Positions 25,890-64,000 of a stretch of 64,000 nucleotides of DNA are shown piece by piece. Under the pieces are notes generated by a model. That model ran no database searches and was not told the origin of the DNA. It worked only from the letters and a program-made list of their open reading frames with translations. The first letter of the stretch is position 1. Every line of letters begins with the position of its first letter. The stretch comes from Epiperipatus broadwayi (taxonomy: Eukaryota; Animalia; Onychophora). The stretch spans positions 23,312,001 through 23,376,000 of the forward strand of contig JAQFVV010000004.1 of assembly GCA_028023455.1 (NCBI GenBank). The letters run 5' to 3'. The translations under genes were made by a program, and so were the position numbers.

Positions 25890-26070
25890 CTCAAATTTCA
25901 TTTTTCTATCATAAGGAGTTTCAATTGTTTCTCTAAAACAACCATCATCTCTCTGATTAGAGATAAGCCATGTCATGGCATGAGAAATTATATCAGGGTC
26001 AATGTAAAGATATGGTTCCCATTCACTGTAACGTGCAGCTCGAAGAGTGCGAGCGACAAAAGCAGTAAGC
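25890..26070 (-). CDS. Mcr: Mcr exon E8: (W)LTAFVARTLRAARYSEWEPYLYIDPDIISHAMTWLISNQRDDGCFRETIETPYDRKMKFE
   Basis: TTTTTTAG acceptor, GAG|GTAATC donor, 181 nt, phase 2-0. WLTAF, WE...YID and DRKM are Mcr motifs. Confidence 0.95.
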
Positions 26071-36103: not shown

Positions 36104-37140
36104 TGAATGAGAGAGTCCGGTTGTTGGGAGGACTCCCAGGGACCTAAAACCTAATTCTTTTTAGGGAGGGGGCTGGAATGAGGGCGCTGTGATGATTGTT
36201 ACCAAAGCTGGTTTTTCTCATTCACAAGATAGAAAAAATAACATTATTTATGGCGATTCTTTAACGTTATCGTCATGAATGATTTTATCCATTTATTATT
36301 GCAAAATAAGTTGCAGTTTGGACTCATGATTTTAATTGCAAGTGATTCACCTTATTTAATTTTATTACTTCCAATGTTGTTATTGATAGGGATGGCCTTT
36401 TGCTGTTCATGTGATTTTCATGATGGATTAGAATGGTTTTCAGCAAAGACATTTTGAAGCTTGGATTTTTATTTTCATTGTTCTCCATAGTTTTTCCATA
36501 ATTTTTCCAAAGTATTCGGGATTGCTCTCTTGTGAAGATATTCGAGGCCATTTGAAGGAACTGAACAGTAGATTTAGTCTGTATTTTATGTTATCTCCAA
36601 ATGTTTTCCTATTTCTCAACTTATCCACCGCAAATTGGATTTCCCAATATTGTACTTCTAAAATACTATTCATGTTTGATTTCTAGACTTTAAAAATAAT
36701 TCCTAATTGTACTTTTTTAATAAAATTTTCATTACAATCAACTTTGCTGATTGAATGAGAGAATATGGTTATTGGGAGGGGCCCCAGAGACCTAAATCCT
36801 GATTCTTTTGAGGGGGAGGGCTAGGAGGAGGGTGCTGTGGGGACTGTTGCCAACGTTGATTTTCTCATTCGCAAGAAGGAAAAAAAACGCTATTCATAGC
36901 GGTTTTAGCGTTATTGTTATAAACAATTTTATCCAATTATTATTGCAAAGTAAACCGCAGTTTGACCTAATGATTTTAATTGCAAGTGATTCACCCTATT
37001 TAAATTTATTATTTCCTATGTTGTTATCTCCAAGTGTTTTCCTATTCTCAACTTATCCATCGCAAATTGGATTTCTCAATATTGTACTCCTAAAATACTA
37101 CTCATATTTGAACTCTAGACTTTACAAATAATTCCTAATT
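36104..37140 (-). repeat. Tandemly duplicated LINE RT fragment (36104-36700 and 36753-37140)
   Basis: Two colinear copies; the second lacks about 190 bp. The first reads EIQFAVDKLRNRKTFGDNI, like the LINE K.PG.DGI linker. Confidence 0.7.
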
Positions 37141-37499
37141 GTAACATTCATTTGTCTTTAATGGTTAATATACACCCTTTCCACATCCCTTTCCCTTTTC
37201 ATATGTATCCTTCCCCTTTTACCATGTTGTTCCTGAATTTCATTTTTACAATTCTTTGTAAACCTCTTATTTAACTGCATTTGTACCATTTTTTTTGATG
37301 AATAGACTTTCATAACTGAGAAAAAAACAAACAATAAAAATTAGAATTGCAGATTTTAGTATTCAAAACAAAATGAGATAAACTTTATAGTTTTGATTTT
37401 ATATTTTATTGAAACATTATAAATTTAGATTATTGTTTTGCTTTTTTTTAATGATTTTATGAATTATTTTCAAGACTCTTTAAAATATATTACACTCAC

Positions 37500-37578
37500 C
37501 ACACGCTTCTGGTTGCACCGTCACCATACATTCCAAATGATCTATCATGATTCTGATAGCTTAATTGCTTCTGATAAA
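37500..37578 (-). CDS. Mcr: Exon E7b: (V)YQKQLSYQNHDRSFGMYGDGATRSV(W)
   Basis: T-rich TTTAG acceptor, TG|GTGAGT donor, 79 nt, phase 1-2. Joins E6 to E8 in frame. Clear paralogue of E7a. Confidence 0.88.
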
Positions 37579-40500
37579 CTAAATTAAAAAAAAAAAAGTA
37601 AAAAAATTACTATATATTAATTATAATAAAATATAGTTTGAATTCATTGTAATCACTGCTGAGTTTGATAATATACATCAAGTTGATAAAATAATAAAAT
37701 AAAGATGGATACAGATAATATGTTTAATTTGGTTGTTTGTCTTCAAAAAAAATATGTACAGTATATTCTTTTTAAAAAATAAATTTATAAAGAAAGTACT
37801 CCCTCCTCCACATCTGTCTAAAAATCATAAGAATATAAATAAAAAAACATAAAAGAATTAAAAAAAAAGAAGAAGACAAAAACCAGAGAAAGGAATAATA
37901 TTTTAAATTTTTTAAACAAAATGTGATAAACTAGAAAACAGTCAAGAGAAGGAGGAAGATCAGTACATAGTTCTTTGCTTGAAGGCTGTTTGAGTAATGA
38001 GATAATAGGATATTGTGATCATATTAAAATAATTGATTAATCATTGGTGGAGTTTGTAATTGTTTATTACTCTCTTAATATTATTTATTCTAGCATCACA
38101 ATGCTAGAGTTATGCTATAAAATATAAAAATGAATAATACATTTTCAGAAAGGAATAGTAAGGTTTCTTTAATGTAGACAAAATAATAAACTAATTATTA
38201 TAATTTATTTAAATTTTTTTTTATTGTATTAAAAATATATATATATAGAAAGAAAAAATACCAAAAATAGTAAGGACTGTGAGATGAAAAGATGGTTATG
38301 CTAATTTAATTAGAAAGAACAAAATGGCGATAAGTCTTAAGTGTATTAGAAAGAAAGCTGATGATAAATTTATTGAAAAAACATACACAAATATATATCA
38401 GGATTATCATTTCAATAAAGTGACAAAAATTCTATTATTCTCTGGATGAGATAAATTTATGTATTTGATATATGTAGTATAAACATTAGATTCAACACAA
38501 TTCATATCTTTGAAATGATTTTGAATATACACATATAGTTAAATTGTTAAAATTTTTTCAAATTTCTAACAGACTTAGACTATAGTCAGCCAATAATCAT
38601 TGATAAATGGAGATCTAGTTATTACTAGCTAGAGAATAATACAAGGTTGAAAAACTATTAAAACCCTCACTATACAATAATTGGAAAGCCTTATGAGTAA
38701 TGACTTCTTTTTCACTCTTCCTCTTTGAGAAGATACGAGAAGTTCACTCGTCTTACCTTGGGATATTTAAAACCCATTTTTATCTTTTTTTTAAATGTAT
38801 ATATGTGTATTAACATAAAGTATTCCATAAATGCAGTATCGTAGGTTTAATGTATATTTTATTTTTGAACCTTAATGTATCTTAGCAATATATATATAAA
38901 TTCAAATAATGCTAATAATAGGAAAATGAAATGAAAAAAATAAATAAGCAAAGCAATACTGATGCAGCAGACATTTTAAAAGAAAATAAGTAAATGCAGT
39001 GATTAGCATCCCACATCATTATAAGGAAGCTGGCTTGTTACTGATTGTTGAACAACCATTCTTAAAGCTCAATCAAAGTAAATCTGACCTATGAATAAAA
39101 TTTTTGAATATGGGGAAGAATATACATTAAAATTACAAATGTTGAATGTATAGCACTGAGGTATGTAATGCAAAATGTATTCATATATTTAATCACTTGT
39201 TTGATAAATAAATAAAATATTTAAATTTTTAAATTGAAAATAAAAGTGGTAAATAAAAGTTTTTGTTTTATTCTTTAAAAAAATTTTTTTTGATAATATT
39301 TAGTTTATAGAAAACCTTACATATACATATATGTGAACTTATCAGATTCATCCATAGATATATTTGCTTATAATTAATATTAGCATTGTGCAACATTTCA
39401 ATTGGCTTATACCTTTAATATTTGAGGTAATAAAGAGCATTCAGACACACTGACTTTCAGGCAACTTTACACCAGTGAATTACCTTTAATACCCAAAAGA
39501 TGGCTGGTAATACCAAATCAAACACTGGTATACAAATCCTCATAAAAATAGTGAAAAAAGACACACATGGACAAAATCATAATATAAGTTCATATAGTTT
39601 ATTTATGAAAATATTTGCTTTAATATATATATATAACAATTATATATGCATAAGGAAAAAAATATATACTCGTATAGGTGTTGAAAGTTTTCAATAGCAA
39701 AAAATGTATTATAAATCATAGTCATTTTTTGGGATTAACTATATAAAATATTAGGCTATAAATGTATGATGCTTTAGCAAAATAAGTTACCATCAAATGG
39801 ATAGATACCATGTGGTCATTACCTTTTTATATCTTTGCTATGCCCACATAATATATTTACCCAATTGAATTTAAATGTTATTTTGCTGAAACGTCAGGAG
39901 TATACTTACATCTTTTAACATTTTATATGATTAAATCAAAAAATTACTAAAAATTATAATATCAATAATTATGCGCTTATAACGCTCATTAAAGAAGTTA
40001 TATATATTATTAAATTTATTTAAAGCTTAGCCCTTTCAAAGCTCTATGGCTTCATAATCATAACTGTATGTGGTTGATAGTGATGAGGGAGTGTATATTA
40101 AATACTTAACATCTAGTTTTCTTTTGTCAAAAAAAAAACCCATTATAAACTAGAAAATTAATCCATATAAGATTTAGGACTGTAAAGATGAAGATGGTTT
40201 TATTCTTATATAGGTTTTCTGACAAAAAAAAAAAAAAAATAACAGAAAAAATTATTCATCCATTTGTCTTACAAATATATACTAAAAGTATAACAGCATT
40301 TTCACATATTTGATAAATTTCAGCTATGATTATAGGCAAACAACCAATTAAAACTGACATTTATAAATTAAAATCAGGCCATATAACAAAATACATTCTA
40401 GGAAAATACACAGAAATTGGTATTATACTTTCATTATTGACATCTATAAAGCCTGTAAATATTTAATTACTTTATATATTGCTAATTAAAAATAAAAATA

Positions 40501-40861
40501 TTAGTGAACAAAGTTAAATTTATATTTCATACAAAAGAATTTAATAATAATTAAAAAAAATATTCTCAGGTAGTCAAGTATTTTTCTGTAAAATAATAAC
40601 AATAATTATTATTTATTTAAACTAACATTAAGAAACTCAATAACTAATTAGTGATTAACATTATTGTCAATATTTATATAAGGTTAAAAAAAAAATCAAT
40701 AGGATATTTGAATGTTTACTATAGAAAATTAGAACATGCTATTATATTGTTGGATACCTGAATATACCAAACCAAAAATTACCATGCAGCAAGCTACAAA
40801 AAAACATTATACTATTGTCAATAAATAACAGATATCCCATGAATAAATTTAAATTATAAAC

Positions 40862-41033
40862 CAAACTTTCAAATTACCCCGTGGATTATTGGGAGTATAG
40901 GGATAACTTTGCATATTGCTTGGTATAGGTGTTTTAAATGCTCCAGAGATAACAGTTTGATTTGAATACTGTGATGGCTTCCAGTCCTTTGGAAATTTAT
41001 ACCTGAACTTCCCATAATACTGCATACGATAAC
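40862..41033 (-). CDS. Candidate exon E7x: (G)YRMQYYGKFRYKFPKDWKPSQYSNQTVISGAFKTPIPSNMQSYPYTPNNPRGNLKV(W)
   Basis: Pyrimidine tract plus CTACAG acceptor, then 56 open codons. Two possible donors: G|GTAATT at 40878 (156 nt, phase 1-1) or TG|GTTTAT at 40862 (172 nt, phase 1-2, ending VW like the canonical exon). Its 3' end shares about 20 nt with E7a. No transcript evidence. Confidence 0.55.
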
Positions 41034-42599
41034 CTGTAGGGAGCCAATCAAAAAAGCAATATAATTTCTAAAAATAATTGTTGTCAAAATATTAAATTTA
41101 AATAAAATTATTAATATAAATCTTTTTTTTTATTATGTACCACAAACAGATAAATTATTGGATTGCAAAAAAAAATAATTTTTTTTTTATATATAATGAT
41201 TCCCAGATCTCATTATAATTTTTAAAGGGGTGCTACATTGGACACAATGAAAAGATTCTATATATTTTTATTAATATATTTATATGTTGCAGGATATCTA
41301 ATAGTATAGATTTAGCAGTTGATGTGAATAAATATTTTCATCCATTTACAAAGCATAAAGTATTCTGTTTGTAGAAGATACATCATATATCAAAAAGCAG
41401 TAAATAATCAGTTATTGCTTATTGATTATTCACTGATAACTTTTTCATACCTAAAGTTCTTTTACTATAAGTTTAAATGTGGATCCAACTAGTATGCAAA
41501 TAACTATACTAATAATTTTCTAAATTTAGGAATTCAAACGAGAGTAAAAGCACACTAAACATATGTTAATAAAGGTGTTAAGATAGCAATTTGAATCCTA
41601 TGTGAAGAATTCCTTTTATTTTTCAATCAGACACAAATCTCAAAAAATATTCAATACCACATTTGTCATCAATTAATCTAATTAATTGTTTAATGATATT
41701 TCATCATTATATATTATATTTTGTTTACATGTAAGTGTCCAATAATAACTGCCAATTTTTTAAAGACTTTGTTATTTATCACCCACAGTAAAGAACAGAT
41801 TCATATATATGTTTTTTTTTTTTTAAACAATCCATAGAATTTACATAATTTAAAATTTTGACAACTTAATTATGAGATGATTAATGAAGAATGAAATTTA
41901 TTTTAATCACTTAATATTGATATTTTTTTAACATTTTATCTCACAATTGCATTTTTATCTATTATTCAAATAATCATGCACTTAAAAGCATAATTACCAA
42001 CAATGAAGTTAGCTACAGATAAAGTTATCAAAAATAATTAATTATGCTCAACTTGAATAAAAAGTTTAAAAAAAAACAACTTATGAAACTATATAAGATT
42101 TATGAGAGAAATCTATAAAAGACTTTTCAAATGAGTAGCCAGCAATAAATTATTAATTAATATATGAGAAGGTACGTGGTGTATGTCTACATATAAAATA
42201 CATTAGCAAGAAAAAAAAGACTGAGAATCTAATGTGACACATATATTGTTACCACAAGATTCAAATGTTAAAGAAAGGTAGATTAGTAATATATAGAGAA
42301 TAATCAACAAACTATGACAATTCTTGTCTTGATCCAAAATATGAAGTATTTTAGAAAAAGATTTAGTTTGGTTGACATTTATGAAGCTAAATTAATTTAG
42401 TGCGAGGATGTGCTGAGTTGTGTCTATATAAGTTAATTACCTAAAAGAATATTTACTATTATTATTTTATTGTCTTTAATATATAATTAAATCAAAGAGA
42501 AGTTCATTTTAAATGCTGAGAATATATATAAAATAAAAAAAAACCATATACTTAGAAAAAAGTTATTAGTGTCTACTTGGTTTGTTAATTAAAAGTTGT

Positions 42600-45500
42600 G
42601 GAACTATATTATCTTTAGAGAAAACAGTAGCTAAGTCTGATATGTATGTCAGGGGTAAAGTCTGGATTCGAATCCCCTTTTAATTATTTCTAGCTTAAGT
42701 ATATATACTATACATATACTTCAATATTACATATTAAAATTGTAAAAGATATTGGAAGTTGAAATATTTGTTATGGTAATTACTAATAATTGACAGAAAC
42801 TGTCTGAACTAATAATGGAAGAATATAATGAATTAATTGATAGCGTAAAAAATGTCACAAAAATGACATAGATGAGTTATTACAAAGATTAGACAACCAA
42901 TATAAATTAAATATGGGTTATTTTAATAATAACAAGTTAAGCAGATTATATGAAAAGAATAATATTATATTCTTGGATATATGGAATCTTTTCAATGAAA
43001 AAAGAATGCTTTTTAATAAAGATAATATACATTTATCAATGCTAGTAGACGAAATATCAGGAAATATAATTTATAACAAATTTTGTAAATTGGGAAATTT
43101 ATAATTGGAAAAGAGATGAAAAAAGCGATTTTTGAAAGAAGATTAATGATAGAATTTACACACACAAAAAAGCAAAGGACAATTTATTCCCAGAGTAGTG
43201 GAATGTTAAGATATATATATTTTTTAAAAGTATATAAGAAAATGAATTGTAAAAGTAAAAATGTAATAATCAAATATAAATTTGTTGTGAAAAAGAAAAG
43301 AGTTGAGAGAACTTGGTGAGAAAGAAATACATTATTAAGATAAAATATATAAAATAGAAGAACAGAAAAATTGTTTAAATGTGAAATGTTTGGAGTGTTA
43401 GTTGTAGTGGCAATATATTAAAAAAAAAAAAGAATCTTTTTTTTCGGAAATTTATACTAGCAGCAGGCAAATAGAAGCGAGAATAAAAGTTATAATGGGA
43501 ATATAGGTTGCATGTAAAAAAAATAAATTCAAATGTTGTTTAGTTTGAAAATAAACAATCAGAAATAGAAGATTATTGTGATATATATAGGTACAGAAAA
43601 TGACCAAGTTATAATTGAATGGAACTATAAATGTTAGGAATGTTTATGAAAAATATATTTGTTTTCAAAAAAAAAAGCAGAAGAAAATAATAGTTATAAA
43701 GAAAATAAATGAATAATAAAAATGGTCTATTATATAAAAAAAAAAATGTCAGAAAGAATGAATAATGCTGGTCTAAAATAATTTGATTATATATCAACAG
43801 ATAAAAAATTAATGAATAAAATAAAGAAGAATGAAAGTTTTTGATAAAAATAAAAATAAAAAAAAGTTCGAGAAAGATATGGAATATAAATGATAAAAAT
43901 AAAATGGACGAACACCATATGACCATGAAAGATTTATTGGATGTGATAATGAAAAGTGACACATATAAGTTTTGAGTAAGATTAACCATAAAATTAAATA
44001 CAATACATAATTTAAAATTAGCAAATTGTAAAGAGAAAGTCTTAAGAGAGCATCAATATGTTGTAAACACAAGAAAAGTGAAATTAAGATTACATGGAAA
44101 GATTATTTAAATAAAATAAAGTTGGTTAAGTTGGATAATTATAGAGAATACTAAAAAAAAAAAAAAGTAGGAAATAAATTTTTTTTTGGAAATATACAAA
44201 AAATTGGAAGATAATTGAAAAAGAAAGTGTATTATTTGATCAGAAAAATAATGATCTACCTGTAGAAAAATAATAAGATGGTTTTCACCAACAATTAGTT
44301 TGGCGTATGTTTATACACACTTGGATATAGTAATGTATTTGCTAATGTTTATTGTAATCATGCTTTGACAAAGATATGCTGTACTGAAATTCTGGCTCAG
44401 CAAAGTAATAATATTGTTTTGTAGCAAAGATTTATTACCATAATAGCATATACCTATAATATAGTTTATTTTTAAACAATGCATACTGCAAAAAAAAAAA
44501 AAAGAGACAAGAGAGAAAATGAGATAGCAATTATAAAATGATTTTATTACTTTTATTATTTATTTCAGCAATGATGATGATGATAATAATAATAAAATTT
44601 ACAGAAAATAGATAAACTGGAATAGAGAATTGATTAATCCAAGAGAAAAGTTTTATTGAAATATTTTAATTTTTTAATAAAAGGGTAAACACATTAGAAA
44701 GCAAATTAATTGTATATCAGTTACCCTAAATTCATTGATTTATAAAATATTTGATAGATGACGGTTGAAAAAAAATAATTAAATAGATAAAGAAAATAAC
44801 ATAGTGGTAAAGGTGAAGAAGGACTAGACACACTTGGCATATAGGTAATAATTTACTTACAATCAGACAATTAACAAAACTGAGAAAGAAAATAGGCAAA
44901 AATTTATAAATATGTCTTTTATAAATATAAAGAATGCTTTTGACAAAATAAATAGAAATAGATTGTGGATAGTTTTGTTAAATAAAGAAATGGATAGAGT
45001 ATTACTGAATAGATTAGAAAATTATATGTAAACTTATTGATTAGAAAATACTAACACAATTAAATTGAAAGTAGTATTGAGTCAAGTCAAGGATATTCCA
45101 TGTCTTCTACATTGTTTTTATTTAGTTTTTTAAAAAAAGTAATTGTCAATAGAAGGATATAAAAATGCTGTAAAATATCTTTAATAAATAATAAGGGACT
45201 GAAAATTTTGTGGAGCCTTTTCTTTGTTACTGATTTATTCTTGTACAGAAAATAGGGGAAATAGGAATATTTTGGTGATTTGTACAAAGAGAGTAAAAAA
45301 AGTGGGATAAAAGTTAGTGATGAAAAGTTAAAATAATAAACGTAAAAGAAAAAGAAAAAAATGAGGTTTTCTTTTTAACAAAGATAAATAATTTCAGGCT
45401 ACTTAGGAATTATTTTAAGTAACTAAAAAGTTTATTAGTATGATTGAATGCAAAAAAAAAAAAAGATGATTAAAAAAGATAACATTGTTTTTGTAATATA

Positions 45501-45750
45501 GATAAAATATATAAATTTTAATAAATGTGAAGGATATACTATATATTATAAAAGGATTCAGAGGGAAGTAGAAAGATATGTTTTGAATGAATATATATGG
45601 ACAGAAATTGAAACATTTGAAAATAATGTTAAAAAGAATGCAAATAGCAAGTTAGAAAATTTTAACAGATTGCACTTTGTGGATAGTGATAGTAATAGTT
45701 AAAAAGGTTTTAATTAAGTTTTAAAATAAGGACATGCATTAAAATAAATA
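42600..45750 (+). mobile_element. Decayed LINE with an SGNH/GDSL-esterase-like ORF1 and EN/RT ORF2
   Basis: ITNN.DR (GTND-like) and FLDIWNLF...LFNKDNIHLS (D..HL). Downstream AFDKINRNRLW and G..SS.LF RT motifs. Confidence 0.55.
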
Positions 45751-46215
45751 AGAAAAATAGTAGAATAAATTAAAAAATTGGAGACAAATTTATGTCAGTT
45801 CATCTTTGTAAAAACTGGGATGATTATGGTTAAAAACATAACAGATATAGAAAGTTGAGTTTTAATATATATAAAAAATAAGCATATTATCAGGAATGAG
45901 AAAAATTTTGATTAACAGTAATTGAAATTAATCTATTCTTTAAAGTTGAAAAAAAAGATAAAAGCATATAAATATGTCAAGAAATTAATTTTTTCTGATG
46001 GCATTTGTTATGAATATGGATCTATTATTTCTATCATAAAAAGCATGCTATAATTATTGCAACTATACATTAAATAAAAATACTTATTAAAAAAAATCAA
46101 CTCTATTTGAAAAGTCTTTATTTTACTATAGAATCTAAAAAATGAATGATGAATGAGACAGACTAAGCATAGATTTAACCCATATAGTGGAGTGTGAAAC
46201 CAAACTTCAAATTAC

Positions 46216-46278
46216 CACGCTTAGGAAAAGCGTCAAATGATCCATCACGATTCTGGTAGTTCAGTTGTCTTTGGTAGC
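46216..46278 (-). CDS. Mcr: Exon E7a: (G)YQRQLNYQNRDGSFDAFPKR(G); could extend to 46201 using a GTTTCA donor
   Basis: TTTTATCTTAG acceptor. Canonical TEP GYQRQL.Y...DGSF motif. G|GTAATT donor gives 63 nt, phase 1-1. The donor choice is inferred. Confidence 0.8.
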
Positions 46279-46979
46279 CTAAGATAAAAATAAAATTCTG
46301 ACTTAAGCAAAATAATAAAGATAATAAGCCAGTAGCATGACCAATGTTAGGTATACCATATTAAATGGGAAGATATTAACAGATGATGTAAGTTAAAAAT
46401 ATAATGCACTTATAAAATATTAATAGTCATGGTAATTCATAAAATTTAATATATGTTCTTAATTAAAATCTACATTGTTTTATACAAAATTACAATTCAC
46501 ACAAAAAAATATCTACAAATTTAAATTCTCAAAAATATATTATATAAGTCCATAGTTAATCAATTCCATATATAAATATTTAAAAACTATTTGTATTATT
46601 TATCTGAGATTTTGAAAATGAAAGTTTTCTATGACAAGGTGACAATAATTAGAAGTGATCAAGAAGATTTCATGCAAATTCTATAAAGGGAAATAAAATG
46701 TTTTCTTTCCAACAATCTTTAACAAAAAATTGTTAAAGTATTTGTAATCAAGGTTCATTATAAAATAATGGTTCTAATATTGCAAGTGCTTATATAAAAT
46801 TACATATTAAAATTATATTTAAAAGAATTAGTAATTACAGATTTTTTTAAAATTTGTTATTGAAGAATATAGTTTACAGGTGTACAATTGTTGAAATGCT
46901 AAGTTCAGTATTAACTTTTATAAAAAATTTTAAGCACAGTAATTAAATATCTGTATAGTAAATATAAAACATTAGTATC

Positions 46980-47880
46980 AGGATGTGATGTGATGCACTG
47001 TGACTTCTTCTTATACAGAGTCAAGAATCTCTCCGCAATTATGCCCAGAGAAACCTGTTAGCCACTTTACATTCCCTTTCCATTCCTACCCTAAGTTTTC
47101 CCATATCCTGCTCCATCCTATTTCCACAACATAATCTTTGTCCATTCCATGGCCTTTATATCTAAATCCCCCTTATCTTTTCCCAAACCCAGCATAAAAA
47201 CCAATAACCCACTTTCTGTAAAATCATTTTGTTTATATTTATTCTTCCACAACTTCATAATTTGTACTCTTTCTGCTTTCAGGCATTTACATTTAATTAA
47301 CAGATGCCTAATATTTTCTATGCCTTCCTTACACAACTTGCAGACTAAATCACCCATATTTTTCCATTTATGTGTATATTCCCTTGTTGCTAAAGATCCC
47401 ATTCGAGTCTTAAACAGTAAATTATTTTCCTTGCTATTATCATAAATTAACTCACACCCTATATTCTGTTTACTTCTATAAATATTTAAACTCTTTTTAC
47501 TCTCCATACTAGTTCTCCATCTCTCTAACTCCCCATTCTTTATTAATGCATCTATTCTTCTATCTCATTCTTTAACACTATAACACTCAACAATTCTCCT
47601 AACATAATCATCTCACCTTTTGTATAAGTATACTGACATAAAGTCTTTATTCAAATCTTCTGCATATCATATTACCTTTCTCACCCATCTTGTTGCCTGT
47701 TCAAGTAATTTGATCACAGTGCCTCTTGTGATTAAATTGATGTGCAAAGACTTAACATTATTATCTGTCTCTCCAAAAAAAGTTTCTTGACCCCTGATTT
47801 ATATATTTGGTATATAACATTGCCAACAAGTTTTCTGTTTCTTCACTCACCTTTAAGATATCAGTTATAATTTTATCACT
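46980..47880 (-). mobile_element. LINE ORF2 3' end with C-terminal CCHC zinc knuckle and (CATCA)n tail
   Basis: ORF 47118..47507 contains CKLC...ENIRHLLIKC. Short repeat tail near 46985-47000. Confidence 0.75.
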
Positions 47881-48646: not shown

Positions 48647-48835
48647 CTATATTTAAATATTCAAAAGCTGTCTTTGCCAATTCATCTGTCAACTGATTTG
48701 TCATTCGTAAATAACGTAAAGTATATAGATTGGCTCCAAAATTAAACATATTTTGTTCACCACATCCATAAGGTTTTCTGAGCATGCTGAATGCTTCCAT
48801 GGGCATGGTTGGAAATGAAGGGCCATAAATGTCTC
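48647..48835 (-). CDS. Mcr: Mcr thioester exon (E6): (G)DIYGPSFPTMPMEAFSMLRKPYGCGEQNMFNFGANLYTLRYLRMTNQLTDELAKTAFEYLNI(G)
   Basis: TTTTTAG acceptor, G|GTAAGA donor, 189 nt, phase 1-1. Contains GCGEQ. Confidence 0.95.
48753..48767 (-). other. Thioester motif GCGEQ (GGA TGT GGT GAA CAA)
   Basis: Read directly from the sequence; both Cys and Gln are intact. Confidence 0.95.
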
Positions 48836-54974: not shown

Positions 54975-57680
54975 ATATCAACATCATCATCATTGCCAAT
55001 CATTATCAATCCACTTCAGAATCAAGGTTTCTCCAAGTTTAATCCATCTTCTCTGATCTCTAGCCGCTCTTCTCCACATCACCCCTGAACACTTCCTTAT
55101 TTCATCCATCCATCTCACATGTGGTCTGTTTCTGGGTCTTTTAAAATCTCTTGAAATATAGTTTAAAACTTCAACTCTTCATCTATTATCATCTAAAAAT
55201 ATGTCCAGCCCAACTCCACTTCAGTCTCTTAATTCTTTCAATGATGTCAGTAACATTTGTTTATTCTCTTACCCATGTATTGCATTTTCAATCTCTTCTT
55301 GTTACTCCTAACATGCATCTCTCCATACTTCTTTGAGTGGTCTGAAGTCTCTGTATTGCTCTTCTGTTAAGTGTCCAAGTTTCAGATCCATAAGTAAGAA
55401 CTGGTAAAACACATTTATTAAAAACCTTCCTTTTCAAACACATAGGCATATTTCCTTTTAATATTAAGTTATTTCTACCAAAAGCACTCCAACCAAGTTT
55501 AATTCTATGATTAATTTCATCCATTATGTTTCCATCTGTAGTAATAATCTGACCAAGGTATTTGTAGTTGTTAACTTCTTCTAACTCATCATTATCAATC
55601 TTTATTTTCATCTTTTGAGAAAATCCATTGAACATTACTTTAGTCTTTTTAACATTTACCTTTAGTCCTACTTTCTTACTTTCATCTGATAACTCTTGCA
55701 ACATTTCCTGAAGCTCTGAAGCATTATTTGCAAAAACAACTACATCATCTGCAAAATCTAAATGACTTAAATAATCTCCATTTACTTTTATTCCTTTAGC
55801 TTCCCATTTTAATCCACAAAATACTTCTTGCAGCACTGCTGTAAAAAGTTTTGGAGATATGGAGTCACCCTGTCTTACATCCTTCTCAATGTTAACCTTC
55901 CTAGTATCATTATGTAATCTAATTGTTGCTGTTGCATTTTTATAAATATTCTTCAGAATATGACAATATCCTGGGTCTATACCTTGATGATCCAATGCTT
56001 TAATCACTGAAGAAATGCTTATAGAATCAAATGCCTTTTCATAATCTACAAATCCAAAGCATAATGGCAACTCATATTCATTGGTCCTTTCTATAACTTC
56101 TCTCAATACTTGGATATGATCTACTGTACTAAAACCACTTTTAAATCCAGCTTGTTCTTTTGGTTGGTTGAAATCCAAAGTTCTCTGTAGATGAGTTGTA
56201 ATTATCTTGGTAAAAATTTTGTATAAAACTGATAAAAGACTGATAGGTCTGTAATTTCTAATATCTTCTTTATCACCTTTTTAAAATATTAATACTGCAT
56301 TCTTCCAATCATCTGGTACATCTTTATCATTTAGACATTTGGTATATAATTTTGCCAAAAAATTTTCTATTTCTTCATCTGCTTCTTTTAAGATATTGAT
56401 TATAATTCCATCATTACCTGGAGCTTTTCCCTTCTTCATAAATTTAATTGCATGTCTCACTTCTTCATTTAAAATCCTGGACAATTCAGAAGATATAATA
56501 GTTGTAGGAGGTACTTGTTCTTTCTTACTATATAATTCTTGATAGAAGTCTTCTACCCATTTCATGATGTCATCTCTTTTTAGTAATAGTTCTATCTTTT
56601 TTTTTTCTTATTGCAGATATAAGTTTCCTACCAATACCAAAATGTTGTTTTACACTCTTGAGACTTTTATTCTCTTCTATAGCTTTCCTTGCTAGTTCAC
56701 AATTATATTTTCTTATATCATTATCAACTCTTTTTTACACCATTTTACAAAATTCGAGATATTCAATTCTTCTTAATGCATCATTTTTATATATTTTCAT
56801 ATTCCTTCTTTTCTTCATAAATTCTCTAGTCTCAGTAGAAATTTTATTGGTCAATTGCTGCTTTTTTTACCAGCTATCTTTGTTGCAGTTTTTAAAAGTG
56901 TATCAGTTATTTTCCTATTAATTTCATACAAATATGAATCATGTTCAAAATCTGCTAATATTTGAATACGATTTGCAAGTTCTAATTTAAATTCATTAGA
57001 ATGTTTCTGAAGATTAGGAATATCAACTGTAAATATTGTTTTTCTTAATAATTTTTGTCTCTCTAGTTTTGCATTAACATGTATCTTACATCTCACTAAT
57101 CGATGATCACTTTCTGTGTTAAATTTATTAAGAACATTACAATCTTGAAATATTATTTTCTTTTAGTCAAAATATAATCCAATTCTGCTGTACCTTCATT
57201 TGGATGCTTCCATGTCCATTTCCTTTTAACATTTTTCTCAAAAAAAGAATTCATAATATAAAGTTTTTCTTTTTCTGCAAACTCCACAACTCTATGTCCT
57301 CTCTCATTTCTATTACCATAACCAAATTTACTTATAGCACTTGCATCTTTTAATTGTTTATCAACTTTAGCATTAAAGTCTCCTATAACAATTTTAAAAT
57401 ATTGTTTGGTCTGATCAAAAGCCTTTTGTACATCCATATAAAAATTCTCTATTACTTCATCATTATGAGGATTGGTTGGGACATAAATATGAATTATCTG
57501 CATTTGTTAGCTGCTATTAAGTTGTATAACAAATCTTGCCACTCTGTCTGATATACCATTAATCTCCACAATGCTGTTCTTCCATTTTTTTTATTTATAA
57601 CGAATCCTATTATAATCACTTTTAAATTCAATATTTGTGCATTTGTAGTAGAGTATATGTCCACTACCAGGAGTATATCA
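54975..57680 (-). mobile_element. RTE-clade non-LTR retrotransposon, 5'-truncated and frameshifted; best-preserved copy in the window
   Basis: EN: IYVPTN, IGDFNAKV, TW.HPN...LDYIL. RT: QAGFKSGFSTVDHI, VRQGDSISPKLF, LDFADD, YKYLG. (GAT)n-like 3' tail near 54975-54995. Confidence 0.92.
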
Positions 57681-62282: not shown

Positions 62283-62539
62283 CTAAAAATAATCAAAAAT
62301 TAACTTATAATAATAATGTTATCTGATAAATTTGAATAATCTTGATAAATAACTTTACTCCAGATTTTCTGTTTGTTTTCCCTAGTAAAAAAGATGTTTT
62401 GGAGAATTATAAAGTGTAAAATCAAGGAGCTACTATTAAAAATAAAGGTAGTTTATAATTAAATTAATGATAGAAGTTAATACAAAGTAATGTTGAATAT
62501 TATTCATTCTAAATAATGATGAATAAAAGTACCTTTCAA

Positions 62540-62900
62540 CGAACATAACAAAAAAGTTGTAACCACAGAGGCCATCAACTTCAATGTTGTGAAGGTTTTT
62601 AAGATTTTCATTCCTTGCTTTAAGATCTAACTAAAATATCTTAATACTGATTTTCTAAAACGAATATTTGGATAATAAATTGAAGCCCTTTTAGCAATTT
62701 TTCAGATGTTATAAAAGTTTCAGTTTCCTCAAATATTCTACTCCCTTTTATGTCATGAATATGGTAGGTGGATGAATAAACAATTGCCCTAATAAGTATT
62801 TTCAATACATAGGAGATCTGGCAATTGATCAGTAAATTATGAAGTTTAATAGAGTAGATACATGTGATTTAGACATTTGCTAATGGAATCAAAAATTTTG
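62540..62900 (-). mobile_element. Tc1/mariner C-terminal remnant
   Basis: Degenerate ARSPDL..I motif followed by VY..P.T-type spacing. Confidence 0.4.
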
Positions 62901-64000
62901 TTTTATTTTAACATGTTTTTAAAATAACAAACTTAAAAGATTTTTTAAGATGTTTTCTTATTTGAGGACTAATGGTTATCTTTTTAGTTGTTAAAAACAA
63001 AACCAATGAAGCTGTTCACAGTTCCATAAATTGTTTCACTAGCTTTATTCATGAATTTTAAAGTAAGATTCATTAATCCTCATTATCTATTAAATTTCAA
63101 TAAAGTTGTAAATGCAGTATAATTTATTCTTGATAATTATGCTTTCTCAAAGTTATTGGATTCTATAAACCAATGAATTATTTTTGAACAGCTTTTATAT
63201 ATATGAAAGACAAATTATCTCACTGTATTTAATAGAAAGTAATCAAATGGTTTATTGTTTGGGAGTTCATAAAAAGTTTTAGCACCTGAAGTGATAGATG
63301 TGGGTCATGATCCAACGAGTTTGAACTCCAACATCTACCATTCACCAATGCAGCAAATGAAATAGGGTGCAGTATTTAATGATTAATATAATATTGATCT
63401 GAACTTATACTTTCTTCAACTGACTAATTTACACATGTTTAAATAATTCCAGTGAAATAATGACTTTATAGAGTAGTTTTAATTTATTTAATTGCCATAT
63501 GTGGTTTGAATGTAGATAAAAATTTGTCAAGATAAGTATCTTTCAAGAGATCTTAAGATGTTTTCAAATATTTGATTATAAATTAATTCATCTAATCAAA
63601 CGAACCAACTAACTTGGGAGTAATATCTTATCTATCATTATTCTTCCATGAAAAGATATTGACAGTGATTTTACTGCAGTGAACTTTTAAAATATTACCC
63701 TTTTTTGAGATTAATAATCACATATCCATGCCATCTCTATAATTATTTAGATTTTTATTTTATGTATAACTTTTTTTTTTACTATTCACAATTACAGAGA
63801 AAAAGTACTGTAAATTAATAAATGTTGTTTATAGTACAGATACTTTGATAAGTTTAAAAAAGATCATGCCATTGTACTTCAAAAATTTTTACTTCTTTCA
63901 CAGTAAGTATATAGGATTTGAAAAAAATATCAGAACCACTTGTAATATAGTTTTTATTAATAGATGTAAAAGCAAAAACAGTTTATTCTTGCATCAAAAA

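Follow-up and report, generated by a model that had tools for sequence, protein, structure and literature searches.

Introduction

Thioester-containing proteins (TEPs) use a buried thioester to tag or trap their targets. Tandem duplication of an exon, with both copies kept in the mRNA, is a general phenomenon that lengthens a protein internally. Here, we analyze a TEP gene of the macroglobulin complement-related (Mcr) type in which three exons, termed E7a, E7x and E7b, follow the exon that encodes the thioester. The gene lies on the minus strand of a 64,000-nucleotide (nt) stretch of Epiperipatus broadwayi DNA (assembly GCA_028023455.1, contig JAQFVV010000004.1, positions 23,312,001 to 23,376,000), referred to below, at its full length, as the window. 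All positions are numbered from the first letter of the window.

Alternative splicing of TEPs is known from the bait-like central region, where exons are used in a mutually exclusive manner; examples are Drosophila TEP2, CfTEP of Chlamys and BgTEP2 of Biomphalaria, the last with 12 exons (PMC7016707). In these genes, and in Biomphalaria BgCD109 and BgA2M, tandem duplicated exons diversify an exposed segment of the protein (PMC7016707). The locus described here resembles them in that respect. It differs in that its exons lie in the thioester domain (TED), whereas theirs are central, and in that its exons are included together, whereas theirs exclude one another. We found no exon-level variation in the TED in the literature searched.

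A second point of comparison is the hypervariable pre-alpha4 loop of Anopheles gambiae TEP1. It comprises residues 914-920, which is +55 to +61 relative to the thioester Cys859, and lies at the TED-MG8 interface beside the thioester (PMC3464232). Variation in this loop between the S and R alleles has been linked to thioester behaviour and to the resistance phenotype (PMC3464232). The insertion in the window protein falls at the same position of the fold. In TEP1, however, alleles differ by point substitutions in a loop of 7 residues, whereas the window gene adds 73 residues by means of exons that are fixed across several related species. Relative to retained exon duplications in general, the window gene is set apart by copies that are frame-incompatible at 79 nt each, and by an upstream copy that was seemingly rescued by a 16-nt shift of its donor. 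An exon-built enlargement of the pre-alpha4 loop by 73 residues has no counterpart in 146 homologues or in the literature searched. It is a structural novelty that is specific to this lineage, within a known family.

Three exons joined in series after the thioester exon

The mRNA has the order E6-E7a(63)-E7x(156)-E7b(79)-E8 (exon lengths, in nt, in brackets), the longest of the routes that a first-pass annotation of the window had listed. The thioester exon E6 (48647-48835, minus strand, as for all features of the gene below; 189 nt, ending in phase 1) matches the start of the TED of Mcr-like proteins by tblastn (..YGCGEQNM..YLNI). It encodes LRKPYGCGEQNMFNF, and the GCGEQ thioester motif is intact. 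The AG acceptor of E6 occupies 48837-48836, so the exon starts at 48835, a small correction to the annotation. The TED exon on the far side of the three, E8 (25890-26070; W-LTAFVARTL...), was located by tblastn with homologues; its first base, 26070, completes the Trp of WLTAFV, and the exon ends at 25890.

The three candidate exons that had been proposed after E6 are present in the sequence where they were expected, each behind a good polypyrimidine/AG acceptor. E7a (46216-46278; 63 nt; phase 1 at both ends; peptide G-YQRQLNYQNRDGSFDAFPKR) starts GYQRQ; it is an upstream, partial copy of exon 7 that ends at an internal donor, G|GTAATT. E7x (40878-41033; 156 nt; phase 1 at both ends) starts GYRMQ and encodes 52 residues. 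E7b (37500-37578; 79 nt; phase 1 to 2; peptide V-YQKQLSYQNHDRSFGMYGDGATRSV-W) starts VYQKQ, is matched by tblastn and is the exon 7 of canonical length, which links to E8. All in-frame routes through these exons that had been listed earlier are in frame with 0 stop codons, and the joins E6-E8 and E6-E7a-E8 fail.

E6 words occur, at shares of 0.2-1.0, in public sequencing runs of a group of closely related species. Contigs of four runs (assembled contigs, not reads) were aligned to positions 40800-46400, the part of the window that holds E7a and E7x. Run X1 is from species A; run X2 is from organism B, to which the DNA runs flagged as the window's probable source also belong; and run X3 is from species C. 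A 2444-nt contig of X1 (depth 48.9) aligns in two pieces, 46281-46214 and 41031-40878, with 1 difference in the E7a piece. A 778-nt contig of X2 (depth 22.2) aligns in the same two pieces with no mismatches. In both contigs the joint corresponds exactly to the junction 46216>41033, across a 5182-nt GT..AG intron at 41034-46215 (CT..AC, cut +2, in the contig joint). The pieces end exactly at 40878, at the donor G|GTAATT, and not at 40862. Past 40878, the unmatched letters of the X1 and X3 contigs correspond, in reverse complement, to the first 30 nt of E7b; past 46281, those of the X1 contig correspond likewise to the end of E6. The X3 contig (1542 nt, depth 113) contributes the piece 40878-40991. 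The contigs continue for 436-1134 nt downstream and 120-1088 nt upstream (436 and 120 nt, respectively, for X2).

Because the joint 46216>41033 is present and the contig ends read into E6 and E7b, the order of the exons in the mRNA is serial. The junctions predicted in the first-pass annotation at 46216>41033 and 40878>37578, and the E6>E7a join, are all found in spliced RNA contigs, and the route E6-E7a-E7x(156)-E7b-E8 is a real mRNA. Both the species of the window and relatives of it use the three exons serially. Words of E7x occur in RNA-labelled runs of seven organisms (A, B, D, E, F, H and L), at shares similar to those of E6, and also in runs of unknown kind from organisms I and M. The contigs, which drop rare variants, contain no skipping junction, no 172-nt form of E7x and no E6-E7b-E8 route.

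Relationships among the exons and a common donor element

By alignment, E7a is a paralogue of E7b, as had been proposed: the local DNA alignment of the two scores 52, against a maximum of 29 among 200 shuffles, and blastn finds 68.8% identity over 96 nt (E=4.7e-10). E7a is 82% identical to mite homologues over 17 residues. In the helix motif, its identity to the family consensus is 82%, and that of E7b is 56-65%. The E7x peptide has no relative in Pfam or the ESM Atlas; it is rich in Tyr, Pro, Lys, Asn and Gln, is poor in aliphatic residues and contains one N-Q-T sequon. The window holds no fourth exon-7-like copy and no duplicate of other exons of the gene.

What E7a and E7x do share is the sequence at their donors, CG(T/G)GGTAATTTGAA(A)GTTTGGTTT, in which 23 of 24 positions agree with one gap. 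The copy at E7a, CGTG|GTAATTTGAAGTTTGGTTT (46195-46219), spans the last 4 nt of the exon and the first ~20 nt of the intron, and the second copy, CGGG|GTAATTTGAAAGTTTGGTTT (40858-40881), lies at the E7x donor. Searched for at up to 3 edits on both strands, the element occurs exactly twice in the window, where shuffles of the window lead one to expect 0.00 occurrences; the common 3′ sequence described in the annotation is therefore borne out. No inverted copy of the element is present in the window. Among the introns that flank the three exons, similarity amounts to AT-rich noise, and it is because these introns no longer align that the near-identity of the element stands out. The 24-nt element may function in splicing and be under constraint. 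In a duplex scan of the 23-kb pre-mRNA, the best value was -20 kcal/mol, no better than with shuffled elements, and there was no partner site common to both copies.

Each copy of the element also contains a second potential donor. In E7a, a TG|GT site persists sixteen bases beyond the donor in use, at 78 nt from the acceptor and so one base short of where the E7b donor lies; we infer that it is the relic donor of an ancestral 79-nt exon. In E7x it is the TG|GTTTAT site at 40862, the donor of the "172-nt" form; this site is unused, as no contig passes 40878.

These features suggest a likely origin of the present arrangement, for which the simplest history is as follows. An ancestral exon of 79 nt would have undergone tandem duplication. 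Two copies of this length, read one after the other, would disrupt the frame. The internal donor G|GTAAT, located after codon 21, would have taken over in the upstream copy, such that its last 16 nt became intron and the copy turned into an exon of 63 nt that begins and ends in phase 1. A further copy would have given rise to E7x, the body of which presumably diverged or expanded to 156 nt. That E7x derives from the donor-shifted copy is suggested by the donor element that the two have in common. Since 63 and 156 are both multiples of three, the three exons can be included together in frame. The duplications would be old, because the introns no longer align. If so, the locus offers a clear example of a frame-breaking exon duplicate rescued by a shift of its donor site.

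A 73-residue insertion in the thioester domain

The serially spliced mRNA adds 21 + 52 = 73 residues to the TED. In the window protein, the W of WLTAF lies 138 residues from the thioester Cys. The corresponding spacing is 64-73 in 51 homologues from a representative search and 59-68 in 95 full-length family members, none of which has the insertion.

Relative to the thioester Cys, the F of DGSF is at +53, the end of E7a is at +59 and the E7a/E7x junction is at +59/+60. The pre-alpha4 loop of TEP1 lies at +55 to +61, as noted above, and with E7a ending at +59 the added sequence starts within the equivalent of that loop. The annotation had likened this part of the protein to the TEP1 loop, and the numbering bears this out. 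In the predicted protein, it follows directly that the 73 residues sit between the alpha3 motif (GYQRQL.YQN.DGSF) and alpha4 (WLTAFV). E7a probably supplies the structural helix, since it is closer than E7b to the family consensus, and the domain is probably built with its copy of the helix motif. Together with the degenerate second copy in E7b, E7x would then make up a surface loop beside the thioester that is large, polar and probably glycosylated. The composition of E7x, its sequon and its lack of relatives would suit an exposed loop. Such a loop could affect the shielding of the thioester or the choice of partner or target.

Resistance or susceptibility of mosquitoes to Plasmodium is accompanied by slight differences in the pre-alpha4 loop of TEP1; the lineage of the window places 73 residues there, in an Mcr-type protein that keeps its thioester. 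An insertion that is well expressed and conserved across several species provides a natural test of what the interface tolerates, and the roles open to such a test are thioester stability, MG8 docking and partner binding.

Serial inclusion and other readings of the exons

Taken together, we consider it probable that exon 7 became tripled by duplication, is spliced serially and thereby enlarges a loop of the TED. Several points weigh against this explanation and should be kept in view. The contigs demonstrate that the serial form exists and that the assembler kept it, not that it is the sole form. The full series is documented in two species (X1 and X2), and the third (X3) documents the E7x-E7b join alone. 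The join of E7b to E8 is inferred from the 436-1134 nt over which the contigs continue downstream. The argument for a relic donor depends on a short and weak similarity to the 3′ end of E7b. Finally, the structural and functional consequences of the insertion are read from the sequence.

It is also conceivable, though in our estimation unlikely, that E7a and E7x act as regulated cassettes. Skipping of one or both, for example by tissue or upon infection, would yield up to four in-frame isoforms (+0, +21, +52 and +73 residues), with the element at the two donors as the common control site. The architecture is compatible with this: both exons begin and end in phase 1 and have lengths divisible by three, and every skipping route is in frame. 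Moreover, the two donors keep the 24-nt element though other exon and intron sequence has diverged beyond recognition, which suggests constraint, and X3 yielded no contig on E7a. The last observation, however, is explained by the X3 contig ending in adapter at 40991. Whereas the phase and length of the exons are those of skippable cassettes, the only junctions seen are junctions of inclusion; no contig carries a skipping junction, the 2444-nt contig of X1 crosses all junctions unbroken, and almost all RNA runs that contain E6 also contain E7x. Of the "combinatorial splice switch" put forward in the first-pass annotation, then, one route is real, and the switch itself is unsupported, as the contigs carry all three exons in series. 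Were the added exons nonetheless skippable, this would be the first reported splice-level variation inside a TED. With E7a and E7x as independently regulated cassettes, the loop guarding the thioester would come in four versions from a single Mcr-type gene. The thioester environment would be tunable by splicing, a mode of TEP diversification distinct from the choice of bait-region exons.

A mutually exclusive cluster of the kind found in Tep2, BgTEP2 or Dscam, with one of E7a, E7x(172) and E7b per mRNA and with E7a disabled by a 1-nt deletion, is very improbable. The exons are tandem and homologous, as such a cluster would have them, and when read through to TG|GT, both E7x (172 nt) and E7b (79 nt) end ..VW and fit E8, with E7a one A short. 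Yet single contigs connect E7a with E7x, and E7x with E7b, through the upstream donors, and the complementarity of docking and selector sites that such systems use was not found in the duplex scan. The 1-nt deletion in E7a, suggested by the read-through ..GNLK(V)W, was considered as part of this scheme and is ruled out by the joint 46216>41033.

Least credible of all is that E7b alone is used, with E7a and E7x being chance open frames or pseudo-exons in decay: E7a-E8 is out of frame, the body of E7x has no homologue and the AT-rich window has many open frames of 70 codons, but the spliced RNA contigs rule this out, since both exons lie inside well-covered contigs with exact GT..AG borders and E7x is present in the RNA runs of many species.

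Gene context and family assignment

Serial inclusion of the three exons takes place in a gene that is larger than the window. The window is very AT-rich (G+C of 25.8%) and contains a single Mcr-like TEP gene on the minus strand, which has very long introns and runs off both ends. Searched by tblastn with full-length homologues, the window shows colinear exons from 62293 down to 573 that account for the A2M domain (PF00207) and most of the TED (PF07678). The last exon seen is at 573-806, and the 3′ end of the gene lies beyond the window. In a mite homologue, an LDLa module (693-721) stands ahead of the A2M domain (747-835). No Cys-rich open frame that could represent an LDLa exon is present within 62290-64000; the exon may sit past the end of the window.

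Several searches place the protein within the TEP family. Against the PDB, E6 matches CD109 and A2M, down to E=3e-11. The closest matches to E6 are arachnid proteins at ~63% identity (Ixodes, Trichonephila and Rhipicephalus). Full-length matches are named macroglobulin complement-related or CD109 antigen-like, come from ticks, mites, horseshoe crabs, spiders and insects, and are 45-54% identical over the TED. In a maximum-likelihood tree of the TED, the window protein falls within the clade of all Mcr proteins, to the exclusion of the A2M and CD109 outgroups (support 100/99). It is not part of the arthropod Mcr crown clade (98/97), and its own join is weakly supported (82/39). The branch that leads to it has a length of 0.71, compared with a median of 0.17.

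By its place in this tree, the window protein is a divergent Mcr-like TEP. Like arthropod Mcr (TEP6; often annotated as "CD109 antigen-like"), it has the same exon-coded motifs and groups apart from A2M and CD109; unlike insect Mcr, it keeps GCGEQ, and unlike the sampled arthropod proteins, it is long-branched and outside their crown group. The long branch suggests either a fast-evolving paralogue or a lineage that has gone unsampled. The tree thereby fails to establish the scorpion or spider affinity assumed in the earlier annotation. Queried with E6, the protein collections gave no match to proteins or transcripts of close relatives. In profile queries seeded with exons of the window, no protein retrieved exceeded 69% identity in E6, which makes the splicing unreadable from database proteins.

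Other elements in the introns

The long introns of the gene hold additional elements. A 296-residue open frame at 55288-56178 (minus strand, the same as the gene) carries an RVT_1 domain (E=4e-27). Within the E6-E7a intron, a 129-residue open frame at 47121-47507 (minus strand) matches zf-RVT weakly (E=1.5e-5, slightly below the Pfam cut-off). These open frames are the remains of retroelements. A search of the whole window against Rfam gave no match.

The E7a-E7x intron contains further features that came to light in the contig alignments. In run X11, which contained every sampled E6 word, no contig covers E7a or E7x; those at 44334-45246 are solely intronic and DNA-like, and differ by ~1.4% and by two indels. 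This is thus a DNA-type run of a close relative or of another haplotype. At ~42660-42735, short contigs of all four runs pile up at ~88-95% identity over a sequence that resembles a tRNA T-arm, GGATTCGAATCCCC, probably a piece of a dispersed tRNA-derived short interspersed nuclear element. A stretch of 35 nt at 44949-44983 is matched by high-depth contigs of X3 (~226) and X1 (~28) with unmatched ends on both sides; it is probably an abundant repeat or a small transcribed element. Finally, the intron just downstream of E7b contains a direct repeat of ~120 nt (36589-36711 and 37022-37143), the two copies of which are 92-96% identical and 432-433 nt apart.

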